Source of the DNA: Pelomyxa schiedti
Lineage: Eukaryota; Protista; Evosea
DNA: 64,000 nucleotides
Direction: 5' to 3'
Assembly (NCBI GenBank): GCA_020536535.1
Contig: JAHLWZ010000406.1
Location: 1-64,000 of the forward strand
Positions 15 to 32,164 of the stretch are shown here, piece by piece. The notes beneath the pieces are model-generated. The model worked only from the letters and a program-made list of their open reading frames with translations. It did no database searches and had not been told where the DNA came from. Position 1 is the first letter of the stretch. The number at the start of each line of letters is the position of its first letter. The translations under genes and the position numbers were made by a program.

Positions 15-2233
15 GTGGCGCCGAAAAGCGAGTTGGGGGAGTGGTGTGAGAACCTTCGTTTGGCCCCTCCTGAGCTATCCTCCCAAGTGCTCAGTGCTCT
101 TGAAGCCAATGCAGTGGACAGTATGACTGTGCTACGTGAACTCACAGCTCAAGAGCAAGAGGAGCTTTGCAATGAAATGAGTTTCTTGAAAGTGGGAAAC
201 AAGAAGAAGGTCCAGGCAGCCCTGAAAGCGTTGGTTCCCAGCCCTGGACCACAACAACTGGTGCCACCACAACAAACCCCCCCAGTCACACTCTCACAGT
301 CAGAGATAAATACCATAGCCGAGTTTGTTGAAGCCGGGTACTCCTCTGAGCGAATCCTAACATTGCTTGGTGGTGACACACAGCCGGAAAAGGCACTTCT
401 CATTCGAAAGCAGATGTCTCTGCTCATCCGACCGCCAAAGGAGCCCCCAACGAAATGCAAAAAGCTCACTGTGAAGCGTCCAGGAGTATCTCACTTGCTG
501 CCACTTTTCCACTACCCCTCACATGAAATTCCATCCAAGAAGTACCACACGTTCTTGGTCATTGGTGAGACAGGCTCTGGGAAAACAACGCTGCTGGATG
601 CCTTTGTTAATTACCTTGCTGGTATGGAATTCAATGACGACTGGAGATGGAAGCTCGTGGATGAGGACTACATTGCCAACAAGCCGACATCTGAAAGCCA
701 GACTGACAGGATCACATCTTATTTCATCAATGACGAAAGGCTTCCAGAGAAGAAGAGAGCTCACGGTGGAGAATTCAATATTCAGATCATTGACTCGCCT
801 GGCTTCGGAGATACCGCGGGAGTTCTCAGGGACAATAAAATCGTTGCCCAGTTTGATGCTCTGTTCCGCACTCTTGACCAGTTGGACTACATCCTGATCA
901 CAGCCAACTCGCTTCAGCCTGGGCACTCGTTATGTATACGATCGCGTTCAGCAGCTATTTGGAAAGGATGCTGCCAGCAGGTTTATATTGATGTGCACAT
1001 TTGCGGAGGAGGGGATTCCACAAGTTGTTGCCACACTGAAGCCGCATTTACACTTTGAAAAGTTCTTCACCTTCAACAATTCCGCTCTGTATATATCCCT
1101 GCGTCGTTTTCCACACTCCAGACCAAGTTCTTTTGGAATATGGGAAACTCGAGCATTGTGAACTTTATTGAATTTGTGAATCAGGCAGCAGCACCCCCTC
1201 TCAGTCTCAAGCTGACTAAAGCTGTACTGGCCGATAGGGAAGCTCTTTACGCGCGCGTTGAGGTAACTCAGCAGAATATAAACTCCGGATTCGAAAAGTT
1301 GGAGTGCATGGGGAAGCTCATAGAGGAAATAAAGAAAAACAGAGGGAAGCTAGATGCACACGGGTCTTTCACGTATGAGACTGTGGAGGATGAATATGTC
1401 AGGACGCCTGCTCCAAAGGTAATCCAATTATGCACTGTCTGCAAAGTTTCCTGTTGCCAAATTTGTGCGTGGCCGGCAAATGCAACTGAATCGCAGTGCA
1501 CCTACTTCAACGGGGGACGAAACTGCCCAAAATGCCCCGGCCAATGTGCCAAGGATAAGCATGTCAGAACATCTGATATTGTGACTATCCGCCAAGTGAG
1601 GGTGACTAAGGAATACACAGCGTTGAGGCAGGAAGTTCAAAACGGGCTGAGTCTGTCGGAAAATGCTCTAAATGAAGAAAAAGAGAGGTTTAAGGCACTG
1701 GCACGTCAGATTTGTGAAGATATGAACAACGTGAAGGGTTTGTTGTCGGAGCTGCAGAGGATCGCGCTGAAGCCCATGGTGTTCACCAACACACAGTACT
1801 TTGAGGAGATGATCGAATATGAGAACAAGAACAAGAACCCTGGCTTTGCTGATCGCATTGAAGGCCTCAATGTAATGCTGGCTCAGGCCCAAGCTCTCAA
1901 CAAAGTCAACTCCGCTTCTACGCCTCTGGACTTGTTCCCAAAGTTTTCAGCTGTTATTGACGCAATTTCACAGAGAGACCCAGGTGCAAGGCAGGGTTGT
2001 TCCTNNNNNNNNNNNNNNNNNNNNNNNNNNNNNNNNNNNNNNNNNNNNNNNNNNNNNNNNNNNNNNNNNNNNNNNNNNNNNNNNNNNNNNNNNNNNNNNN
2101 NNNNCAGGCCCAAGCTCTCAACAAAGTCAACTCCGCTTCTACGCCTCTGGACTTGTTCCCAAAGTTTTCAGCTGTTATTGACGCAATTTCACAGAGAGAC
2201 CCAGGTGCAAGGCAGGGTTGTTCCTTGATGTAG
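15..2233 (+). pseudogene. SAM-like domain + septin/AIG1-related P-loop GTPase with Cys-rich C-terminal region; two frameshifts (pseudogene or consensus error); 5' end may lie upstream of the window
   Basis: G1 VIGETGSGKTT and G3 IIDSPGFGDT. SAM-like N-terminus (ELGEWCENL...LKVGNKKKVQAAL). Protein-like coding continues in the +1 frame from ~907 to ~1092 (TRYVYDRVQQLFGKDAASRFILMCTF...FTFNNSALY) and returns to the first frame at a TATATA run (~1090). Cys-rich CTVCKVSCCQIC...CPKCPGQC. C-terminus QGCSLM* lies after the gap. Confidence 0.75.
1884..2225. other. Scaffold gap (100 N, 2005-2104) flanked by an exact 121-bp duplication (1884-2004 = 2105-2225)
   Basis: The sequence caggcccaagctctc...gggttgttcct appears identically on both sides of the N run, typical of unmerged overlapping contig ends. 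Confidence 0.9.
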
Positions 2234-6868: not shown

Positions 6869-7137
6869 CTTGGGTGTGTTAAGCAGATCGCTCAAATCTA
6901 ACCACCGGCTGTTCGAAGGTTAGCCACGATTACGTGACGATCAGATCTTGTTTTTTCGGTCAAAATGGGAATGAAGGTTTTCTGGCAGAAAACCTGCGCA
7001 GGGGAATCAATGTGTCACACAATGTGGGTGCGAAGTGGAGGTTCCCAGCAATTACTCAAGTCAGATCCAATTCGGGCACTTGGATGTGAACACTTGGCCG
7101 TTTAAAAGTGGCACAACGAACCAAAAAGCAGCAAAAA

Positions 7138-10100
7138 ATGAAAAAGAAAGGAATACCGTCGCATGGGTTGTGGGTGGGACAGGCCGTAGTTCTGGACAGG
7201 ACCACCAACGAGCCAATATCCACCATCGAACTCACGTGGTCCCTATGCCTCACCCTGAGCCCCACTTTTCCCGCTGCCTTTGGTGCATCCCTTTTCATGC
7301 CCTCTTCGTCCCCGTCCCCCTCGCCCTCGCCCTCGTCCTCTTCTCTTTGTTCCTCTGCAGCCTCCTCCCCTCCGTCTCCGGACCAGGAGGCGGCCTCGAC
7401 CCCGAGCGCTCCCCCGCAGCGAGGCGGGCAGTTCGGGCTGCTCAGGGGGAAGTGCCAGCAGGCGACGGGGTGGGTGGGCCCGCTGGACGAGTACGTCGAC
7501 GGCGTGCTGGTGAGGACGTGGTCGGCGACGGCGCAGGCGGGCGACGACGGCGCCATCGAGCTCACCGGGGTGTGGCGCGCCGTCCCGCCAGGGGGCCCCG
7601 CGGCCTCCGAGGGCGCCGCCGCCGCGGCGGACCCGAGTGCTGCTGCTGCTGCTGCTGTTGTAACTGCAGGCGTCTTCGCGATGAGGAAGGAGGAAGAAGG
7701 CGAGAAGAGGAGGAAGGGAGAGGGCGAGGGAGCGGAGGAGGGGGAGCAGCAGGCTACTGGGGACGCGGCGGAGAAGCGGCACTTCTCGGGGCTGTGGCTG
7801 GGGCAGGCTGCTCCGGACCCGTCCTTGGAGGCGTTCTTCATCGCCACGAACCCAATTCGCTGGTCGCTGAGCATCGTGGACGACAGGGCCGCGCTCTCCG
7901 TCCCACAATTGCGGGAGAGGGCACGAGGGGGCAGTAGCAGTAGCAGTAGCAGTGGCGGCTCTTCTGGCCCTGGGGGGCTGGTGTTTGGCTGTGGATTCTT
8001 TGATGATGCTGCTGATGTGCCGAACCAGCCTTTGCTATTTTTCTCGCTGATTGGGACTTTCGACAGGCAGACATCTACGGTGTGTCTCATAAAGGAGTAC
8101 GAGGACAAGTCTGCTGGGTATACTGTGGAGTACACGGGAAAAGTACCTTTCCCTTTGTTTTTGCTTTTGGCACGATTAACTTTCAATCAGATAGAACAGG
8201 CTGAGGATAAGAGTGTCTGGTTCCGGGGTAGTTGGAACAATCCTGTTGCTGGAAGCTTTGGAAGCTTCAGTTGTATGCAACAAGCTGCCAGCGGGGTTGC
8301 TTCTATGCACATCTTCCAATGTGATGTCTGTAATGTACTTATAACACCTGGTGAGAGCAGGTGGAGTTGTGCTGATTGCCCAAAGCCCTGGTGCTGCTGT
8401 ACCAAGTGCTATGCTGCCGCCACGTCTTTGGGAAATCTGCACCCTCATAGCCTTAGACCAGAAGCTGTCCACGAAGCGGAATTTGCTCAAGGAGCTTGCA
8501 GTGCACAGTTGATTGTTGATGCATTCCGCCGGTTTCCCAAACGTGACTTCTTGGGTTTCCGTGCAACCGCGTCCCAGAAAGAACATGAGTGGCAGAGCTA
8601 TGCACAAGTCGCTGAGGATTGCTACAATGTTGCATGTGGCTTGCAGTCTGTTGGTGTCGAGGCTCGCAATGTAGTATTGTTTTGCTGTGACATTGATCAC
8701 ACCTATGTTGCCCCTCTACTGGCTTCAGTAGTCTTAGAATGTATTGTAGTTCCCGTTCATGGTGCACTAGATGCCGATTCTTTGACTCATATTTGTGCAA
8801 AAACCAAGCCAGCAGCGTGCTTTGTTTCACCTGAATACTGGCCTAAACTTAGTGAAATACTAGCATCTACTTCAGTTACGCCAAAGGCAATTATTATAAT
8901 GCCCCATTCTTCCACCACAGCCCCAACGGCACCTATTGCCTCACCCCAGTTTGCCTTCTTTGATACACGAACAAAGTTGATGGAAGTTGGTCAAGTGCAC
9001 CGTCAAGGTCCAGGGCATGAATTTTTCCAGTCAAAGATATTGCACCCACCTCGCCTCCCACTAAGTGAGATAACGGCGGTACTGTTCACGAGTGGTAGCA
9101 CTGGCAGGTTTTTCCTTCCTCAATCTACTCCTCAGTTGTTTACCACTTCACAGACCAAAAGGAGCAATGTTCAACGAAGAACTTCTTCTACCAAGTGAGG
9201 GTGTATCTGTTGTGCAGCCGTATATTCGCCTTGATTTTCAGGTGAAGCATTTTTCTTTCAAGTAAAATAACTAATCCACGCAAAAAGCCATTTGATCCCT
9301 CGTTTCTTCTCTCAGTGCTATCCACAATGCAGTGTGGCGGGTGCCGTGCCTTTGCACACTCACTGGCAACACTCATGGATGACTTCAAAATTGCACGCCC
9401 TACACATGTGGGAGCATCACCTGTTCTTTGGAACTCCTTACATACAGAGTTCTGTGCCAGAGTGGCAGAAGAAATGAAAAATGTGCTGAGTGACAGCACT
9501 ATCGACAAGAAGAAACAGCAAGAACTCGTTGAAGAGAACGTGGCCAAGCAAATGCGAGCACAACTTGGGAACAGGCTCAGTGTTGCCACAAGTGGTGGTG
9601 CCCCAATTTCCAACCAAGTCATTGAGTTTGCCAGGAGGTGGCTGTCTCTCTATATTGTGGACCTATATGGAAGTAGGGAGACTGGCGGGATTTCCCGTGA
9701 TGGAGTAGTCTATGCAGGTGTTGATGTCCAATTACTGAGCCATCCAGAGATGGGCTATTACGCCGATGGCGATCCTCCACAAGGAGAGATCTGTGTTGCA
9801 GTACGTAAAGACCTAAATTATCTTCGTTAAATGCAGAACTGATTGTGCTGTAAAAAGAGCCCAAGGCTTATACCAGGGTACTGGGGAGATGAGGAATTGA
9901 CAGCTGCTGCTTTCGTACAAATAAATGGAAAACGATACTACAGGACGGGTGATGTTGGGGAAATATGCAGACAAAGCGGCACCACTCGTGTGCGGGTTAT
10001 TGATAGGTGTTCTAATGTGTTCAAGCTTGCACAAGGAGGTAAGAACGATTTCACTTATTCCACTAAGTCTCTAATCGGAAACAGAGTGGCTAGCACCAGC

Positions 10101-12118
10101 CAAAATAGAGGCAGTTTTAGAAAAATGCCCGTACATTAAGCAAGCATTGGTGACTGGAAGTCCGGCGCAACCCGTAGCTATTGCTGTAGTAGTGCCAACA
10201 CCACTTTTTACCCAATTTTGGGGTTTGAAGCCCGCCGATGAGTCTGGGATGACAGCATGTGAAACAACCATCTTACGAGAGATCCGCTTTTGGGCCAAGC
10301 ATTGTAAGTTGCGCCCCATTGAGATCCCAGCTGCTGTGCACTTGGAAAGAGTAGAGTGGACTCCAGAGAACGGACTATTAACATCCACAGAGAAAAAGAG
10401 ACGCCAGGTTTTATGTGGCCATTATAAAGGCATTGTAGAAGGCTTGTATGCAAAGCTATCATCCAGCTCAACTTCAACTTCGGCTTCCAGTACTGTCCTT
10501 GATGAGGACAGGGGGGAGACCGTTTCGGCCAACTTTGAGCGAATTATCCGAAGTGTGCTTCCACCAGGTGTCTCCATCAGCCCTTCAGCAACTTTTACTG
10601 AGATAGGAGGAGATTCACTATCAGCGGCACGTCTGGTAAACACCCTTGCTCAGGAGGGGTTGTCAGTGGCTCCACAGATTGTATTTGAGTATCCCTTGTC
10701 ACACCTCTCAAGAATGCTTGAGCAAACAAAGAGCGGATCAGTGGTGGCTTCTGAGCAGTACGGTGGGAGTGTTGAAGTTAACTGGGCTGCGGAATGGAAC
10801 TTGCAGAGCTATGGGCTTAATACAAATTTGAGTGACACACACGTGGCCCCCAGTGGCAACCGCGATGGCGGCAGTGTATTTGTGACTGGGTGCACAGGGT
10901 TCCTGGGTCCTGTTCTGGTATCTGAAATTTTGGCGCAATATCCACCCACAGTTTCCGTGCATTGTTTGATGCGAGATCAAAATGAAACTGCAGCAATGAG
11001 TAGATTGTGTGATGGAATAAAGGATGCCGGCCTTTGGCGTGACGATTATGCCACTCGGTTACATGTGGTTCTTGGAGATTTATCAAAGGAAAATTATGGA
11101 TTATCACCTGAACAGTTCCAACTTTTGTCGAAAAACTTGATTGCTATATATCACAGGTACCACCTTTCGTTGTAATGTTGTTTACAAACTTTCATTGTAG
11201 TGGTGCTCGAGTGAATATGACAATGCCCTATTCCGCTCTGAAACCTGCCAATGTAGGCGGAACAGTTACTGCCATCAAATTGGCAGTTCTAGCGGGTCGT
11301 GGTACAACTCTCGCCTATGTATCATCTGTAGGTGCACTTCCACCTATTGTGTCTTCCTCAAGTAGTTCCACTCCCGACGAAGAAGCACTTCAATGCCGTG
11401 AACAGTGGCTCAAGCTTGATTCCCATACGATGGGGTTAAAGGGGGGCTATGGACAATCCAAAGCCGTGGCCGAGCGCCTACTGTGCCACGCACGTGAAAT
11501 TCTTGGAGTAGATGCACGTGCATTTAGGCCATCAGCTGTCAGTGCCCATACACAGACCGGCTGGTGCAACACACTCGACTTCACCACACTCATACTGCAT
11601 GCCTGCGTAGCCGCACGAGGCATTGTTGCTGATCCGGAAACAAAGCTCCGCTGGATTCCCGTGGATTTTGTAGCCTCAGCCATTGTTTCTCTCAGCCGGG
11701 CTCCCTGCTGTGCTGCAACTCATGGTGTCCACCACCTTGGAGGCAGTGGACCGCTTCTATCACATGTTGGCAAAGTTCTGGTTTCTGCCGGCTACACATT
11801 GGATGTATGTTCTCCCTCTGAATGGAGGACAAGAGTCACTGCAGCAATCACGCCAGAGAGTCCCACTTTTTCCGTATGGAATTACAAATTTGTCTTCACA
11901 AGTACTGACAACAAACAACCTAGGTGAAGCACCTGCTATCCAACTATCACTTTTCACCTGAGGGACAAGGGACAATACCGCCTGGGTCTGGCACTCTGGC
12001 TGCCCTTAAGCAAATTGGCTTGGCTTGGCCCAATGAAGAACAGGCATTTTGTCCAGAGGTCATCATGAAAGCAATCAATTTCCTTATCACCAAGAAATTC
12101 CTCCCCTCAACTCCCTGA
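7138..12118 (+). CDS. Carboxylic acid reductase-like NRPS-type protein (adenylation-thiolation-reductase) with N-terminal beta-rich domains and ZZ zinc finger
   Basis: A domain: FTSGSTGRPKGA (spliced), YGSRETG, YYRTGD, FKLAQGEWLAP, NGLLT. PCP: GGDSLSAARL. SDR reductase: VTGCTGFLG, GYGQSKAVAE, WIPVDFVA. ZZ-like CDVC..WSCADC..CTKCY..HPH. Introns are canonical. Confidence 0.88.
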
Positions 12119-25050: not shown

Positions 25051-25246
25051 TTTCGTGGTTCCTGAACTGAGTCCCAATACACTTTTAACAAAGTGAAGAA
25101 GGTGCATTTTTGTTGTTATTTGAGGAACTAATTACACGTTGGTTTTTCCCAAAGGCTTCTTTTTGTATTTACATAAGAAATTGCCTTGATAAGACTTACA
25201 GAGAGTTGTTGGTTGGCAAGGTCCTGACAAGGTGAAGCATTACTGG

Positions 25247-28200
25247 CTAGAAAAGGGAGAAAGTCGCTTCCGTGTTTTTGGATAACCACGGCCTCTGATC
25301 TGAGCGAGCCCGCATTAGTCCCATTGTGTCATTAACAATCTGATCAAATGAGGTACAGGGTGGTGCTGTCTCCACAACTGTGTTTCAAGCTTTAGTATTT
25401 GGGGAATGCTGTTTTTAGGGAGGTAGAACCGTCCAAGAAACATCCGGTAAAAAGACCGTTGTCGGGACGCCTGGCACCACCGTCAGCTGCTGACATTCCT
25501 GCAAAACAGTCAGTATCTTATGTGTACATAGTTGATGCAGAGAAGAAATTACCTGGGCTTGTGGGATAGAAAATTATGCACCCATCTAATTGCACCGCTG
25601 CCAGGCCCGGCTTCGCCACGGCAGCAACTCCGGCACCACGTGGCTTGTGGAAAAATTTGTCATCAGTATTTCTTGACTGGAAGGAAGTTCATACCAGTGC
25701 TTCATTAGGGTCACGTGATGCGCGGCAGCAATCTAAAATGACAATAACCAGGTCTGACTCCGCTTTTATTTCATTTATGACTGCTCCAAGGATTGGTGCC
25801 TTGGCTTCGAGTTCGGTAAATTTTTCGTCTTTTGAGCCTACTGGAGGAGTATACTCCGTCATCAACAAAAAGTTCTGCCCTTTTTTCTGGAGTCCATGCC
25901 CAGCAAAGTAAAGAAGGCAGGCATTCTATAGACATTAGAGTAAACCAGGTTGTTTGAAGCCAGCTTTTTTGTAAAAACCTTTTTCCCTGACGATTTACTT
26001 TTAGCTTTCATATCTGCTCTCAATTTTGATAAGTGCAAATAAAACGCTTCCCGAGAGGGTACATCCGTGAGGTGTGTCACATCAAACTTGCATTTACTAC
26101 TTAAAAACTAGAGTGTGAATTACAAGATATTCACATTCGAAAAAAGAGAACCTCTGCAATGCATTTGGCGTCATTGAGTGCATTTTGAAGTAGGCCTGCC
26201 ATGTACGTCTGATTACCTATAACAAAAGCAAAGCAATTGAAATCTAGTTCTGGTCCCCAAAGAGGAGTGATAGCCCGGTGTTCAGGTGCTGCTTGTATAG
26301 CTGCTGAATTAAGTGCCAGTGGAACTGACTGGTTCATCTGGGATCGGGAACCATTTCGTTCATCAAACCAATGCCAAGTTAAGTTATACAGCATGTTGGA
26401 AGGTGCGATGAACTGCACATCTGAACCATTTGTTGTGGAACTTGTGGGATTGTGGGCAATTCTCCTCAGGACAGAGCTGGCAGAAAAGAGCATTTGAACA
26501 ACTGGAAGGGGCTCAATGATGCCATTTGAGCCCTTTCTCCTTGGTGTGTCTCGCACAGCCTGATGGAGAGCATGGAAAAGAAGTGTGCCACTATAGTCCC
26601 TATATGAGACACTGTCTGCTAGTGTAGAGTGCACCAGAACCATATCTCCTTCCTCCACTGTGATATCACAGCTTTTGGAACTTGAAGCCCCCAGCTCCCG
26701 TGAAATAATTTCCACAGCAGGTGTTTTTTGTGGACCTCTGCACGCGGCAATCAAGAAAAACTTTGCCTTCCCTTGCAGTGTGGGGCTTCTCGTGCAGGTA
26801 AAAATACCTAAAGAGAAAAGATTTATTATCTGCAAGTATTTTAAGGGCGAAATACTCATTATATCTTCATGTACGGATATCTTTTGCCCATCTACATCAA
26901 GGAGACAGTCTTTGCCGCCTACTTCTTTGCCGCCATGTGAACCACTTACAAATACAAACGAGTTGGCAAGGCTATTATCAGTTGCTGCAGAAATTTTGGT
27001 AAGAGCCCGAATGAGATTCTCTTTGATTGGGTTCTCCATGTAGAGAATGTGAAAGAAAGACCCAAATGCTTTTTGAATGATAGCCAGGTCATTCTCAGCT
27101 CCACTTCTGTCCTTTGTCGTATTGGCAAATAGAAGATACCCGTTCTTTCCATGCTGCAGCTACAAATTCCAGTAAATTTTGGAGTGGTTAGAAGTATTGG
27201 GCCTACTCTGGGAAGAAAAGAATCCACGCTCAGGGTATCAATGGATGGGCTCTAAGAAATGCAATTAGGGTTGACAAAGGCCAAGAAACCCACCTTGATA
27301 GTGACTGGTGCAAGAGACAGAGAGGCTGTCGAGCGGGGGATAGAGGCTTCAGAGGGTGCTGATGTGGCAGAGGGCGTCGAGGGTACAGAGGGTGTGGAGG
27401 CCGAAGAGACTTGAGATGTTGGACTTGTGGTATCACTCTCCTCTGGAAATTGGCATAAAGAGGATAAAGACACAATTTCAGGTGAAGCTCCCCTCACAGC
27501 AGTTGTGTAGTTTCTTGGTGCCGTGAGACAAGAGGAATCAAGCTCACTAGTGTCACTTCCATCCTTGTGGGTAACTAGAAACTTGTACAAAAGAGGGCTG
27601 CCCATGTAGCGTCTCAAGTTGGCAATCCAGTACCCACTAGCGGAGTTAAACGTCATAGGAATAGGTTCCCAGCTGTTGAGATTACATGTAATTGATACAG
27701 AAATTACGTCCGTGCGGTTAGAGTAACAGAGTGTTGTTGTTACTTGTTTTTTGGGTTGAGTGGCAGAGTTATCAGGTTGCAGACTCCTTTTGGCTGGAGT
27801 GGGAGTAACTCTGATAATTTCGAACTGAGGTTGGCCGGAATTTTCTGAAAGGGTCATCCTATCTCCATACTTTGCCATAAGATAGTGCGTGGGGAATCTG
27901 TACATTCCCAGTCTACCCTTTGGATGTGTGCCTGTTGTATCATCCCCAACGTGAAACCACCAATAGTCGTCTGCACAGTTCCCCTGTTCCCATGCACCTA
28001 CCCAATGTTTGCCCGAATTTTTGCAGTCCAAGAGCCTTGGCCGGCCCTTGGAGTCCGTTTTGTCTGGAATCATGATTCTGTAAGTGGAAGGCGAAACTTC
28101 ACAGAACTCAAATATAGTGGACTTTGATTCTATTGCCGTCCTCCTCAGCCACAAATTTGAATTAAGTCGCAGGAATTCCCCATTAACCAGTCTAATCCTT

Positions 28201-31200
28201 GCACTGAATGTCACATTTACTGATGGACTTTTATAATGCGGCGAGCCTGTATGGTGAGCGATATATTCTGAAGCAAGGAAATGCTGTTTCAAAACAAAGT
28301 CTTTAGTCCTTTCAATTGCAAATTGTCTTGGACGAGAAACTGGCTGTACGTCTAGCAGCAAAGTCTTCAGTTCTTCATCCACCTTCATTTCCCAAAATGA
28401 CTTAAATAAGGTTACAAAACCATAAAGTAAGCCCAATCCCTCTGGTTTCTTTGCCTTCCAGGATCGCATGTCTTCTTTTATAAGTTGCACCAGTTTGGGC
28501 TTGATATTGGTACAGTAGAATAGAGCATAGAGCCATGTTGCAAGCCGAGTGAGTGCCAATCGTCCATTGATTTGTCCTCTGTCCCTGTCACATGGGGACT
28601 CACGTGTTGGCTCCCAGACTTCATATCTCTTCTCCTTGTCGGTAAAATCAACTACAGATTCCTCATCAGCATTCCATCCTCTGCGGTTTGCATGTGTCCA
28701 GTAAAGTGAATATGTACTTAGGGAGCCCAATGGGTTATAGTGACGCACGACTGTCACGAATTCATCAGCATGGGCAAATACATCTTGTAATGGGTGGAGG
28801 CCTTTCCCAAGGTTTTTTGCAGCCTCTCTACGGACAGATTTCCCAAGTGCTTTTCGTAGCTGTTGGAGGCAATGTTGCAACCTCGAGTCAGAGTCATGTC
28901 CACCTTCCACAGTATGGTTAATATTGAAGTGCCACGATTGTGCATATGCTGAAAAGATATTCGACGGCGTTGTGGAGAGCGCATCATCAACCTTTTGGAA
29001 AAATTGTTGGTTAACGAGGGACGTATAGGAGTCTACAACCTTTTGGCAAGACTTGCTCACATGGGAGCTCCACTCTTCATCAAACCCTGCCTCACAAAGC
29101 CATTTCCAGGTATTACCTTTGTGCACAGTCTCACCCCAATCAACCATGAAAGCGCGAGGTTGGAACAGTGCTCGATCCCCGCTGTCATAATCATGGACAT
29201 TGGAACTTGGGTCAAAGTTTAAAAAACTGTCAAGTACTTGCTGAGCAGTGGTGTTTCGGCCATCTTTGCATTGTTTGATAATTTCTACTAAAGAACGAGG
29301 TATTTTCTCAGATAAAGGCAAGCTTGAGGCATTACGTATAAGGCTGGGCTTAGGAGTCATTTCAGCAAGCATTACCCCAAATGAGACAATATCTTTCGCA
29401 CAGGAGATAGTAGCCTGTCCAAGTTCTGCACTCAGTCCATAGCCTGCAATTGCGAGATCTGTAACCTTCGTTCCCAGAACATTGACAAGTATATTCTCGA
29501 GTCTAATATCACCATGCACAATACCGAACTTGTGTATGTCCCGAATTCCAGATATCACACGCTGAGCAATGAAGGCCACGTCAGTCAGTGAGAGGATGGA
29601 TATGTACTTGAGAAGGTAATCCTTAAGTGAACAGCTGAATCGTGGGCAAATCATGAACCACTTGTCTGCCTGCTTGAAAAGCAGCTGAAATGGGAGGATA
29701 TTTAATGCTGTATCTTCTACTGTGTGCCGAAAAAATGCATCCTCAAAGAATTGACATTGCACAGCTTTTGTAGCAACTGCCATGTCCAATTCTCTCCCCA
29801 TCATGTGACGATTTTCCCATACTACCTCCAGTGCTGAAGTACCCCTACCTCCTGTGTCAATATCAAGTCGGGGAGAAACACCAGATAAAATCTCGCTTGG
29901 GGGATCAATTTCTCTATGTTTTGCCTGGAGGGCTAAGATTTCTGCAATGAGCTGCCCAATCAAATGTCTCATCTCTGTGAGATTTGTACTGTGTTTTTGA
30001 AAATGTGGTATCATATCTGCCCTCAGCTTGCGCCGTTGCTCTAGAATTGTCTTAAGATCGGAGGTAAATCTTTTCAATGTTCGGCGCGTTACTTCAAAGA
30101 AGAAGGTTGCATCAGATGATAGACAATCGTTTTGAAAAGCAAGAACTGATCTTAGCATTGCCTCCAAAATACTGGATTGACGAACCTTTTCGTCAATCAC
30201 TCGCGCGTCGAATACTTGACGAAGTTTTTCCTCAATCACTCGCGTGTCGAATAGTTGACTGAAGTGGTCGTCCATTAAGCGATTGACGAATGGTGGGACA
30301 CGTGGACCCGCGTCTGTTTGACTCGAATAGCAATCCAAGCAATATCTGAGATGAGAAATAATATTAAGTTCAGCTATCTGCACTATCTCCCTCAGGGTAT
30401 CGTCTTCCACAAGTTTTTGGAGGCTTTTATGTATACTCTCTTTGAAAAAGCAACAGAGATCGTTCACAATGGGGTAGGTGAGTTTTTCTGCCAGTGGCTC
30501 TCTATATTTACTGAGATATTCAAGGGGGATAATCCTTTCATCCTCAGAGAACTCTTTTCTTACTTTTTGCATTTTCCTGGCAATGATAGAGGGGATTGGT
30601 GTCAGTTTGCTCCGTAGTTCTTGTTCACAAGCAGTTTGAAAATTATCAATCATCCCAACGATGTCACGATACCATTTTTCAGTCCCAGCTGGAGTACTGA
30701 GGCGTAATGTATTGAAGTTTCTGAAGAAGCAGCCCAGCGCATCAACCATATACTCCAATGCCTGGTTGCACCTCTTTTTTTGACTGGCAATAATCCAGAT
30801 TAAGAACCATAAATAGTCCAAAGGAAAAGTCACTTGGACAGTCACCAGCCAAGAAATCTTGGGCACTGACACAGCAGAAGCAATTACAAAAATCAAAGCG
30901 TCCCACCTGATCTGCAAGTTGCATCCTATTCAGAAGGGTACTGAGCCTGTCACTGTTGAATTTTTCAACATCTATCCTTGTGGTCGAGCTTGGCCTCTTG
31001 TTCAGTTCTATGGCAATGCGTTGCAGCTCAACATGAGTATTGGCAAAAAAGATTTCTGGTATGTTGTCACTGGCGGAGTGTGAAAGGATTTGTTTCAGCT
31101 GGGCGCAAGCCTTAAGCTCAGTGGGACCAAATGGAAGAGTTGTAAAGGAGAAAACAACTCCATGAGGAAGGTATGCCGATAAAAACGTTGTGAGGAAGGG

Positions 31201-32164
31201 GGCCAGAATGTCACCAAATTGTTCAAAATAAGTAGAACCTGGCAAATTAGCCAATTCTATCCCCGTTTCAAGAAGTGGCAGGGGGACTTCAGCAATAATA
31301 AATTCTTTTAACCATGCCTGGAGCTCTGTCACTCCTGGGTTTTAATTTGTCAGTTACATGAACAAATGAGCTAGGCCTTACCGTTTGGAAGACTTGCATT
31401 CGAAAGGTGGACAGCTAGATGGGTACCAATTTCAGAAGCAGAAGAACAGTCTTGCAGACGTTCCAAAACTTCACCTGCAACGATTGTGCCATTAAGGATT
31501 CGCCCAATCCGAACGCAGGCATTTGACTGCTTTGCAAATCTCAACAAGCAAACTTTGTATGAACAAAGTGAATGTCCAGGAGGGAGAATAGTACCGCCAC
31601 ATAGACAGTCAAGAAGAGCAGATTTGCCTTATTAAAGGCCGTTGTTATCAACTGTGAACAAAGAAGATGGGGTAGGTACCAGAACCCTCGGGACCAAAAA
31701 AGGCAATGCGCAGAGGATGAGGCTGGCAAATATTTTCAACATACTTCTGAATCGTTGTAGACATGAGCGCAGCCTCCTCTGTACCTCCAAGAAATTCCAG
31801 AACCTCACCGTGCAGTGTTTTAAATCCTTCAAAGCACAGTGCTGTTGGTGCGAATAGGTGTTCTGGTAAAGAAGCAAGACATTTCCCCAGTTTTTGTCGG
31901 GAAGTGTCGTCCTGGGCTGTGTGCCGTGTGATAAACTTATGGGAAGCCGCCACATAGTCCTGGAAGGTGAGTGCATTTTTGCGTGCTCCAGTGCAACGAT
32001 ACATTTTGAGGTAGAAAAGTTGGTTTGCTTTATTCGTATCAAGATTAGTTAGACATTCCGCTTTTCAAAAGTTGGGCGTTGAGACAAACTTGGCTTGGTT
32101 CCTCTGCACAGAAAAAGTCCTCCTTGATGGTTTGGGAGCCTTCCTCTAGGAGTTGTGGCGGCAT
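25247..32164 (-). CDS. Giant multidomain protein: dynamin-like G domain - helical region - pseudokinase - HET-C/Zn-PLC-like domain - beta-rich domain - CBM48-like - caspase (p20+p10) - paracaspase-type C14 domain
   Basis: Spliced GPEGSGKSALLDCLCGGTILP. Kinase-like HGDIRLENILV..IAGYGLS..DIVSFG. WGETVH..WHFN..LGKGLHPLQDVFAH. VSITCNLNSWEPIPM..YKFLV. Caspase: RSGAEND..SHG..GKAKFFLIAACRG..STLADSVSYRD. Second C14: VIGNQTY..LQNALNDA..YFAGHG..ILDCCR..NGLFT..QRPW. The ORF segments join through canonical GT-AG introns. Confidence 0.8.

Follow-up and report, generated by a model that had tools for sequence, protein, structure and literature searches.

We analyzed a window of 64,000 nucleotides (nt) from the genome of Pelomyxa schiedti, namely positions 1 to 64,000 of contig JAHLWZ010000406.1 (assembly GCA_020536535.1), and all coordinates below refer to this window unless another contig is named. 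We found that a minus-strand gene in it, whose 2008-amino-acid (aa) product KAH3763173.1 was automatically named "caspase 8 [Pelomyxa schiedti]" in GenBank, gives this free-living anaerobic amoeba a protease domain of true caspase type (MEROPS C14A-like). The domain, here called domain 1, occupies residues 1478–1720 of the protein (26380–27156, minus strand), and animal caspases resemble it more than do paracaspases, metacaspases, or any prokaryotic protein that we found. According to textbooks and recent reviews, caspases occur only in animals, while protists rely on meta- or paracaspases (PMC5756287, PMC10896300). Judged from the sequence, caspase-type domains are not confined to animals, and the Pelomyxa domain may cleave after aspartate. 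The best explanation of the data, to which we assign a probability of about 0.6, is that a genuine C14A-like domain 1 acts within an expressed multidomain protein as an active, acid-directed, and proximity-activated protease.

25199..32004, minus strand: whole gene, KAH3763173.1, 2008 aa (tblastn map, exact cluster look-up, protein sequence)
26380..27156, minus strand: caspase-type (C14A-like) domain 1 (Pfam, PDB sequence matches, exhaustive search, AlphaFold2 model, VIA Z 24)

Caspase Identity of Domain 1

The Pfam family Peptidase_C14 (PF00656) matched domain 1 with an E value of 9.3e-18 and 65 bits against a cut-off of 21.4 bits, and therefore the match is not due to chance. The four caspase-like peptides quoted in the first-pass annotation all lie within one minus-strand reading frame. 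The best 60 sequence matches in the PDB were all caspases, among them caspase-8 (E 2e-6) and caspase-3 (E 2e-5). An exhaustive phmmer search of 1.84 billion representatives returned 18 non-self proteins below E 1e-3 (best E 1.5e-8), to which domain 1 was 30–36% identical, and those with a name were all metazoan caspases, including proteins from Lingula, Batillaria, Haliotis, corals, insects, a mite, and amphioxus. A profile built from these matches found 108 proteins, and the named ones were again all metazoan, including a sponge and a tardigrade. The domain had initially been described as caspase-3-like. Its caspase type stands, but an affinity to caspase-3 in particular does not, as caspase-8-like and effector-like proteins are found alike among the best matches; moreover, domain 1 is one module of a 2008-aa multidomain protein and not an enzyme by itself.

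Pattern scans with the caspase profile over the viral contigs of IMG/VR and 185,579 prokaryotic genomes found no relative, although the sensitivity of such scans is limited. A word-indexed protein search with the 341-aa translation gave no match either, the method being too insensitive at such divergence. In the Atlas, where proteins were compared by language-model features and predicted shape, the neighbors of domain 1 were animal caspase clusters and one unnamed cluster of Parabasalia.

That Parabasalia-dominated cluster contains 72 unnamed proteins of about 293 aa (feature similarity 0.93) and provides a lead to protist caspase-like proteins. Two other unnamed caspase relatives came from metagenomes, P0032 (401 aa, ENA metagenome) and P0056 (389 aa); in one of them Peptidase_C14 is accompanied by MORN repeats and in the other by ubiquitin, and they might be non-animal caspases.

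The structure of domain 1 was predicted with AlphaFold2 from a 66-sequence alignment (predicted local distance difference test, pLDDT, 79.3; predicted template modeling score, pTM, 0.79). Its strands and helices follow each other as in caspases, down to the last helix and to a final strand that is short and of low confidence. This model superseded a first one built from 12 sequences (pLDDT 66), in whose alignment MAFFT had misplaced the C-terminal helix and strand. All of the best 50 Foldseek matches in the PDB were caspases. The model was also ranked with VIA-align against 48,161 representative solved chains, which gave the following Z scores:

Caspase-8, 24.2; caspase-9, 23.6; caspase-3, 23.6 (over 207–212 residues)
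Other caspases and c-FLIP, 18–19 (c-FLIP protease-like domain, 18.7)
MALT1 paracaspase, 18.1 (11% identity)
Metacaspases, 16.3, 16.2, 13.4, and 12.2
Bacterial GSU0716, 15.5
Legumain, 13.7
SAVED-CHAT, 12.8

Sequence, language-model features, predicted shape, and structure ranking all support the earlier proposal that the domain is C14A-like and not meta- or paracaspase-like.

Catalytic and S1-Pocket Residues

The hallmark columns of the family were counted over 107 caspase relatives aligned to the profile, with caspase-1 numbering for the equivalent positions:

27106..27108, minus strand: Arg17 of domain 1, caspase-1 Arg179, S1 pocket (Arg in 105 of 107 relatives)
26935..26937, minus strand: catalytic His74 of domain 1 (His in 106 of 107)
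26746..26748, minus strand: Ala121 of domain 1, replacing Gln, caspase-1 Gln283 (Gln in 105 of 107)
26740..26742, minus strand: catalytic Cys123 of domain 1 (Cys in 105 of 107)
26599..26601, minus strand: Arg170 of domain 1, caspase-1 Arg341, S1 pocket (Arg in 94 of 107)

Domain 1 retains the hallmark residue in four of these five columns. What the first-pass annotation had read by eye, an intact His–Cys dyad, two retained S1 arginines in what turned out to be Arg-dominated columns, and an Ala in place of the Gln of the QACRG motif, was borne out in each respect, and the PDB alignments to caspase-3 and caspase-8 agree on the arginines. His74–Gly75 and Cys123–Arg124–Gly125 stand in invariant or near-invariant columns and have the S-H-G and A-C-x-G contexts. 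Among the 107 relatives, the exceptions in the Gln column were the Ser of the Lingula match and one Asp. Residues 135–151, which run from the Cys strand to the small-subunit strand and contain Asp and Arg/Lys, are disordered in the model, and their position is that of the intersubunit linker in caspases.

In caspase structures, Asp is selected through the charge of the two S1 arginines, and its carboxylate at P1 is also hydrogen-bonded by the Gln. We infer that domain 1 is an active endopeptidase preferring an acidic P1 residue, because both arginines are kept, and that its binding is perhaps weaker or altered, because the Gln has become Ala. Where C14B enzymes are acidic in the pocket, domain 1 has Arg, Ala, and Arg.

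Gene Structure, Expression, and Host

The gene lies on a contig of 133.5 kb. Its 3' end is at 25199 in the deposited model, or at 25247 if an unspliced stop is taken. The following introns were recognized in and around domain 1:

27252..27293, minus strand: predicted 42-nt GT..AG intron where the long open reading frame ends (sequence and deposited model, outside RNA-contig coverage)
27160..27206, minus strand: predicted 47-nt GT..AG intron directly before domain 1 (sequence and deposited model, outside RNA-contig coverage)
26808..26855, minus strand: in-frame 48-nt GT..AG intron inside domain 1 (DNA sequence and deposited model)
26108..26151, minus strand: 44-nt intron (spliced out in an RNA contig)
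25926..25978, minus strand: 53-nt intron (spliced out in RNA contigs of two runs)
25498..25551, minus strand: 54-nt intron (spliced out in RNA contigs of two runs)
25378..25429, minus strand: 52-nt intron (spliced out in RNA contigs of two runs)

The intron inside domain 1 directly precedes the third of the peptides quoted earlier, and the query has 338 aa versus 322 aa in the deposited protein; with this intron removed, the alignment to animal caspases is free of gaps at that point. The intron directly before domain 1 ends with three bases that form an in-frame stop. Two codons past this stop the first strand of the domain begins; no in-frame ATG lies ahead of the strand, and the first in-frame ATG is found only downstream of the first S1 arginine. 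Therefore, domain 1 cannot be a separate gene and has to be joined by splicing to exons upstream. The two predicted introns at 27160–27206 and 27252–27293 link it to an open frame of 1221 codons, as in the deposited model.

The RNA evidence consists of contigs from two single-cell RNA-seq runs of the same study as the genome and concerns the 3' third of the gene. The four introns downstream of domain 1 that were spliced out in these contigs measure 44–54 nt and have GT..AG ends on the minus strand. RNA contigs were also found on 26247–26608, inside domain 1, and on two pieces farther upstream. The gene is expressed and spliced in P. schiedti.

At position 26472, which belongs to the C-terminal part of domain 1, a single RNA contig of run X1 has T where the genome has C (G to A in the coding sense); this may be an allele, a cell-to-cell difference, or an error.

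The P. schiedti assembly (52.4 Mb, 5337 scaffolds) was obtained from seven micromanipulated, whole-genome-amplified single cells (PMC8887013), and the assembly that we searched comprised 52,367,397 bases in 5337 contigs. A Logan contig of a DNA run of the same study, possibly the assembly's own source, contains the whole 6-kb stretch in one piece and without any difference. The host suspected to be non-metazoan is indeed P. schiedti, a member of the Archamoebae, and the scaffold is not a chimera, as indicated by the Logan DNA contig, the spliced 3' RNA, and paralogues of the GTPase module on at least six other contigs.

Other Modules of the Protein

Read from its N terminus, the protein consists of a dynamin-like GTPase, a degenerate kinase, about 560 residues of unassigned fold, domain 1, and a paracaspase-like C14 domain:

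30910..31710, minus strand: dynamin-like GTPase module, residues ~100–330 (Dynamin_N, paralogue alignment, exon matches)
29412..29702, minus strand: partial degenerate protein kinase, residues 691–787 (Pfam Pkinase, E 2e-10)
27417..29147, minus strand: middle region of unassigned fold, residues ~860–1420 (sub-threshold Pfam hints only)
25250..26232, minus strand: second C14 domain, paracaspase-like, residues ~1770–2001 (Pfam, E 1e-20)

Dynamin_N matched residues 100–225 with E 8e-6 and 26.4 bits, just under the cut-off of 27 bits, and a paralogue scored E 1e-14. The P-loop of the GTPase (G-x4-G-K-S) is intact, while its G3 motif reads N-L-P-G as against D-L-P-G in three paralogues. The kinase covers only positions 59–151 of the profile, which the paralogues match in full; its catalytic loop reads H-G-D-I-R and its DFG position D-L-A, and it appears to be a pseudokinase. 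Both upstream enzyme modules may thus be non-catalytic, and since both look degenerate, the whole protein could be a non-enzymatic scaffold. The middle region had no paralogue in the genome (residues ~860–1420) and no match among PDB sequences or in the Atlas (residues 860–1470). Assignments of this region to a Zn-dependent phospholipase C/VWA7_N (HET-C-like) domain or to CBM_48 stayed sub-threshold (E 0.009–0.044, below the cut-offs). In the word-indexed protein search, residues 1–1470 matched only the protein itself.

The second C14 domain has the catalytic His and Cys, and an Asp two residues before the Cys aligns with Asp462 of MALT1, whose structures were its sole PDB sequence matches, weak as they were (E 0.2). 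In MALT1, this Asp is part of the acidic pocket that binds Arg. With this acidic pocket residue, the second domain is therefore probably Arg/Lys-directed. As far as these motifs tell, the two clan CD heads of the protein differ in kind, the first being caspase-type and the second paracaspase-type. A predicted complex of the two domains, modeled with an intramolecular pseudo-dimer in mind, scored 0.00, which speaks neither for nor against such a dimer.

Related Loci in the Genome

The assembly contains 18 six-frame matches to Peptidase_C14. Besides domain 1, three caspase-type loci were distinguished on two contigs (C511 and C165):

C511, 41952–42630 (~41.9–42.6 kb; L002, L007), minus strand: two-exon caspase (zebrafish caspase-3, E 7e-17) with canonical Q-A-C-R-G
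C511, 3452–4195 (L001): CED-3, E 3e-8, with CED-3/caspase-1 as best PDB matches; His and Cys contexts present in the translation
C165, 21659–22336 (L003): caspase-8, E 8e-7; catalytic Cys lost, pseudo-caspase

The two-exon copy on C511, which also has the S-H-G context of the His and the W-R motif of the small subunit, is much nearer to animal caspases than domain 1 is. It is probably a better first target for enzymology, which lowers the value of the present gene. In phmmer comparisons, domain 1 reached at best E 0.0016 with these three loci, which are not close paralogues, and a comparison of domain 1 with the proteins of its own genome gave no paralogue.

The other modules have their own relatives. 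Paralogues of the second C14 domain were found on five contigs (C423, C448, C238, C694, and C511). Those of the GTPase module, 35–47% identical, were found on at least six (C882, C602, C824, C1748, C492, and C733), with arrays on C602 (~1.5, 7.6, 11.5, 15.4, and 52.6 kb) and C882 (two tandem genes). One long frame on C882 carries both Dynamin_N and Pkinase, and three other paralogue frames match Pkinase. The GTPase family is lineage-expanded in Pelomyxa, partly in tandem. Six-frame searches for BIR, CARD, Death, and Bcl-2 domains across the genome detected none; these domains are short, the genome is intron-rich, and the searches had no positive control.

Phylogeny and Origin

A tree was built from 66 rows, of which 59 were caspases (32 of them named animal proteins) and 7 were Pelomyxa C14 domains, over 247 columns. 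It was obtained by a quick maximum-likelihood search under LG+C20+F+G4 with posterior mean site frequencies (PMSF). The canonical caspase of C511 entered one exon at a time, and the rows did not include canonical paracaspases, metacaspases, or the Reticulomyxa sequence discussed below. A branch with 99% support in the Shimodaira–Hasegawa-like approximate likelihood ratio test (SH-aLRT) joins domain 1 and the canonical C511 exon to the 59 caspases, apart from the five other Pelomyxa C14 domains. Outside this caspase clade fell the C511 3.4–4.2 kb and C165 loci, which grouped together, and the paracaspase-like domains. Within the clade, domain 1 adjoined the caspase-8-like protein of Lingula (94%); both have long branches and both lack the Gln, and we do not trust this pairing.

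When all non-Pelomyxa rows were constrained to one clade under PMSF, the cost was 8.3 log-likelihood units, with p 0.34 in the approximately unbiased (AU) test. A position of the Pelomyxa sequences outside all animal caspases is thus not rejected, and these data would fit transfer from an animal as well as pre-metazoan descent. A lower value (AU p 0.02, 22 units), obtained with FastTree topologies under the site-homogeneous LG+F+G4 model, was not reproduced under PMSF and was not relied on. The finding bears on whether caspases were present in the ancestor of Amorphea or were acquired by gene transfer.

Interpretation and Alternative Explanations

In the mechanism that we propose, a scaffold would bear two protease heads, domain 1 and the paracaspase-like C14 domain, and the N terminus of this scaffold would belong to the dynamin-like GTPase and kinase family that has expanded in Pelomyxa. 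Self-association of the GTPase, driven by nucleotide or ligand, might bring the caspase domains together, and the gathered domains might then be switched on by induced proximity, as on initiator-caspase platforms. The likely setting would be cell-autonomous defense or regulated cell death, and not the apoptosis network of animals; the architecture and the expanded GTPase family suggest a protist cell-autonomous immune or death device. By analogy with initiator-caspase platforms and NTPase–protease conflict systems, the product would most likely be a GTPase-scaffolded, proximity-activated protein with two heads. We regard it as rather improbable that all parts hold jointly, that is, an acid-directed caspase head that kills or signals on a GTPase-driven, self-assembling defense or death protein, with Asp-type and Arg-type heads and of pre-metazoan descent. 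If this were true, caspase-based regulated proteolysis would predate animals, and its coupling to oligomerizing NTPases would have arisen more than once.

Several points weigh against an active, proximity-activated caspase domain in this protein. The similarity is low, with at most 36% identity to any caspase and a best E value of 1.5e-8, and the branch of domain 1 is very long (2.0 changes per site). The protein searches found no orthologue of the gene. The pocket position that is Gln in 105 of 107 relatives is occupied by Ala121. Among the partner modules, the G3 motif of the GTPase is degenerate (Asp to Asn) and the kinase motifs are altered; elsewhere in the genome, the caspase-type locus on C165 is without its Cys. 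The junction at 27.1–27.3 kb lies outside RNA-contig coverage, and the fusion to the upstream exons comes from the sequence argument and the gene model. The alignments behind the structural models consisted of animal caspases, which biases the models toward the caspase fold, although the order of the structure ranking agrees with the sequence evidence despite this bias. Lastly, activation by oligomerization is proposed purely by analogy.

Some of these points are shared by the idea that domain 1 is a pseudo-caspase, which would dock or regulate as c-FLIP does for caspase-8, leaving any proteolysis to the second C14 domain. The loss of an almost invariant Gln, the degenerate G3 Asp and kinase motifs of the same protein, the pseudo-caspase on C165, the match of the c-FLIP protease-like domain to the model (Z 18.7), and the long branch all fit it, but the His, the Cys, both S1 arginines, and the adjoining Gly residues would not be expected to persist in a decaying domain, and the Lingula caspase-8-like match also lacks the Gln. 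On balance, we judge a pseudo-caspase somewhat unlikely. The domain might also be an active protease that is caspase-like in ancestry only, its remodeled pocket accepting Glu, a broad range, or some other residue at P1. Ala121 stands in place of the Gln that hydrogen-bonds the P1 carboxylate, the S2–S4 loops are poorly conserved, and residues 135–151 are disordered in the model. Both arginines that supply the positive charge for an acidic P1 are nevertheless retained, and we hold an active protease of this other specificity to be distinctly improbable.

Considering that protists normally carry C14B enzymes, as the reviews state, and that the same protein has a paracaspase-like domain, domain 1 might be an Arg/Lys-specific paracaspase, metacaspase, or orthocaspase with a superficial likeness to caspases. 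However, neither the best 60 PDB matches nor the named matches of the exhaustive search include any para- or metacaspase, the Z scores of C14B structures are lower by 6–12 units, and domain 1 has Arg and Ala at the pocket sites where C14B has Asp, which makes this very unlikely. A source in animal DNA or in a chimera within the single-cell assembly is hardly credible. It would account for the named relatives being all animal, and whole-genome amplification of single cells (PMC8887013) could favor it, but no animal protein is more than 36% identical, and domain 1 needs the upstream exons of a GTPase–kinase family with paralogues on at least six other contigs. Moreover, introns are 42–54 nt throughout and four of them are spliced in Pelomyxa single-cell RNA, the Logan contig of the DNA run holds the whole 6 kb in one piece, and BIR, CARD, Death, and Bcl-2 domains were not found in the assembly, this last test being weak for want of a positive control.

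Other Genes in the Window

Two adjacent long open frames at 15–2228 (plus strand) may represent another NTPase-type signaling gene near the caspase gene. The first has a P-loop NTPase signature (AAA_29, E 8e-7; Septin and nSTAND_NTPase5 sub-threshold), and the second, in which the assembly has a run of N, is Cys-rich. A carboxylic-acid-reductase-like gene lies at 7108–11927 (plus strand), with AMP-binding, phosphopantetheine attachment site, and NAD_binding_4 matches, preceded by an N-terminal stretch very rich in GC and in Ala/Ser.

Comparison with Known Systems

The first-pass annotation took true caspases to be essentially metazoan. The reviews cited above agree with this premise, but its strict form is overstated, in view of Reticulomyxa filosa (Rhizaria). 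Caspase-like proteins of this organism, such as ETO10778.1, branch with animal caspases at 92–95% bootstrap in the published account, whose authors held caspases to be older than animals (Klim et al. 2018, PMC5982838), and a Reticulomyxa sequence has been used as outgroup in trees of metazoan caspases (PMC10959488). Going by the published description, these proteins resemble domain 1 in being non-metazoan and affiliated with caspases, and they belong to another supergroup; a GTPase–kinase fusion of the Pelomyxa type is not mentioned in the accessible part of that account (PMC5982838). They did not appear among the named matches of the exhaustive phmmer and profile searches with domain 1. Our literature search found no report of a caspase-type domain in Amoebozoa or of the present architecture, and no paper that treats P. 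schiedti and caspases together. Reticulomyxa is the only published exception to the animal restriction that we found, and Pelomyxa is a second case, in an independent supergroup and expressed. The Reticulomyxa precedent and the existing "caspase 8" label in GenBank lower the value of the finding; the protein is a concrete test object for Asp-directed caspase chemistry outside animals.

Domain 1 has the fold of metazoan caspases (C14A), with the large (p20) and small (p10) parts in the same order and a disordered linker between them. As in those enzymes, His-Gly and Cys-Arg-Gly motifs are present, a conserved Asp precedes the small-subunit strand, and the S1 pocket has both of its arginines. 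It differs from them in its identity of 20–36% and in having Ala for the pocket Gln. The protein lacks a CARD, a DED, and a short prodomain; domain 1 is instead preceded by about 1470 residues, with the GTPase, the degenerate kinase, and the unassigned region, and is followed by a second C14 domain. The host differs from animals too, as BIR, CARD, Death, and Bcl-2 domains went undetected in this amoebozoan by the six-frame search without positive control. The paracaspases (C14B), such as MALT1 and the Dictyostelium paracaspase, share the clan CD fold with domain 1. Around the His and Cys, including the Asp before the Cys, it is the second C14 domain of the gene that resembles MALT1, whereas domain 1 has Arg/Ala/Arg in place of the acidic pocket and matched MALT1 with a Z of 18.1.

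The GTPase–kinase–caspase–paracaspase architecture is unlike any caspase context that we found. Its closest counterparts in logic, an oligomerizing NTPase joined to a clan CD effector, belong to immune or conflict systems: apoptosome-type platforms, and in bacteria and fungi the STAND or SAVED NTPases that carry CHAT or caspase-like heads. The likeness is one of analogy: the NTPase of Pelomyxa is dynamin-like and not of the STAND type, and the Pelomyxa protein would combine a caspase-type head and a second protease head with it in cis, in a single chain.

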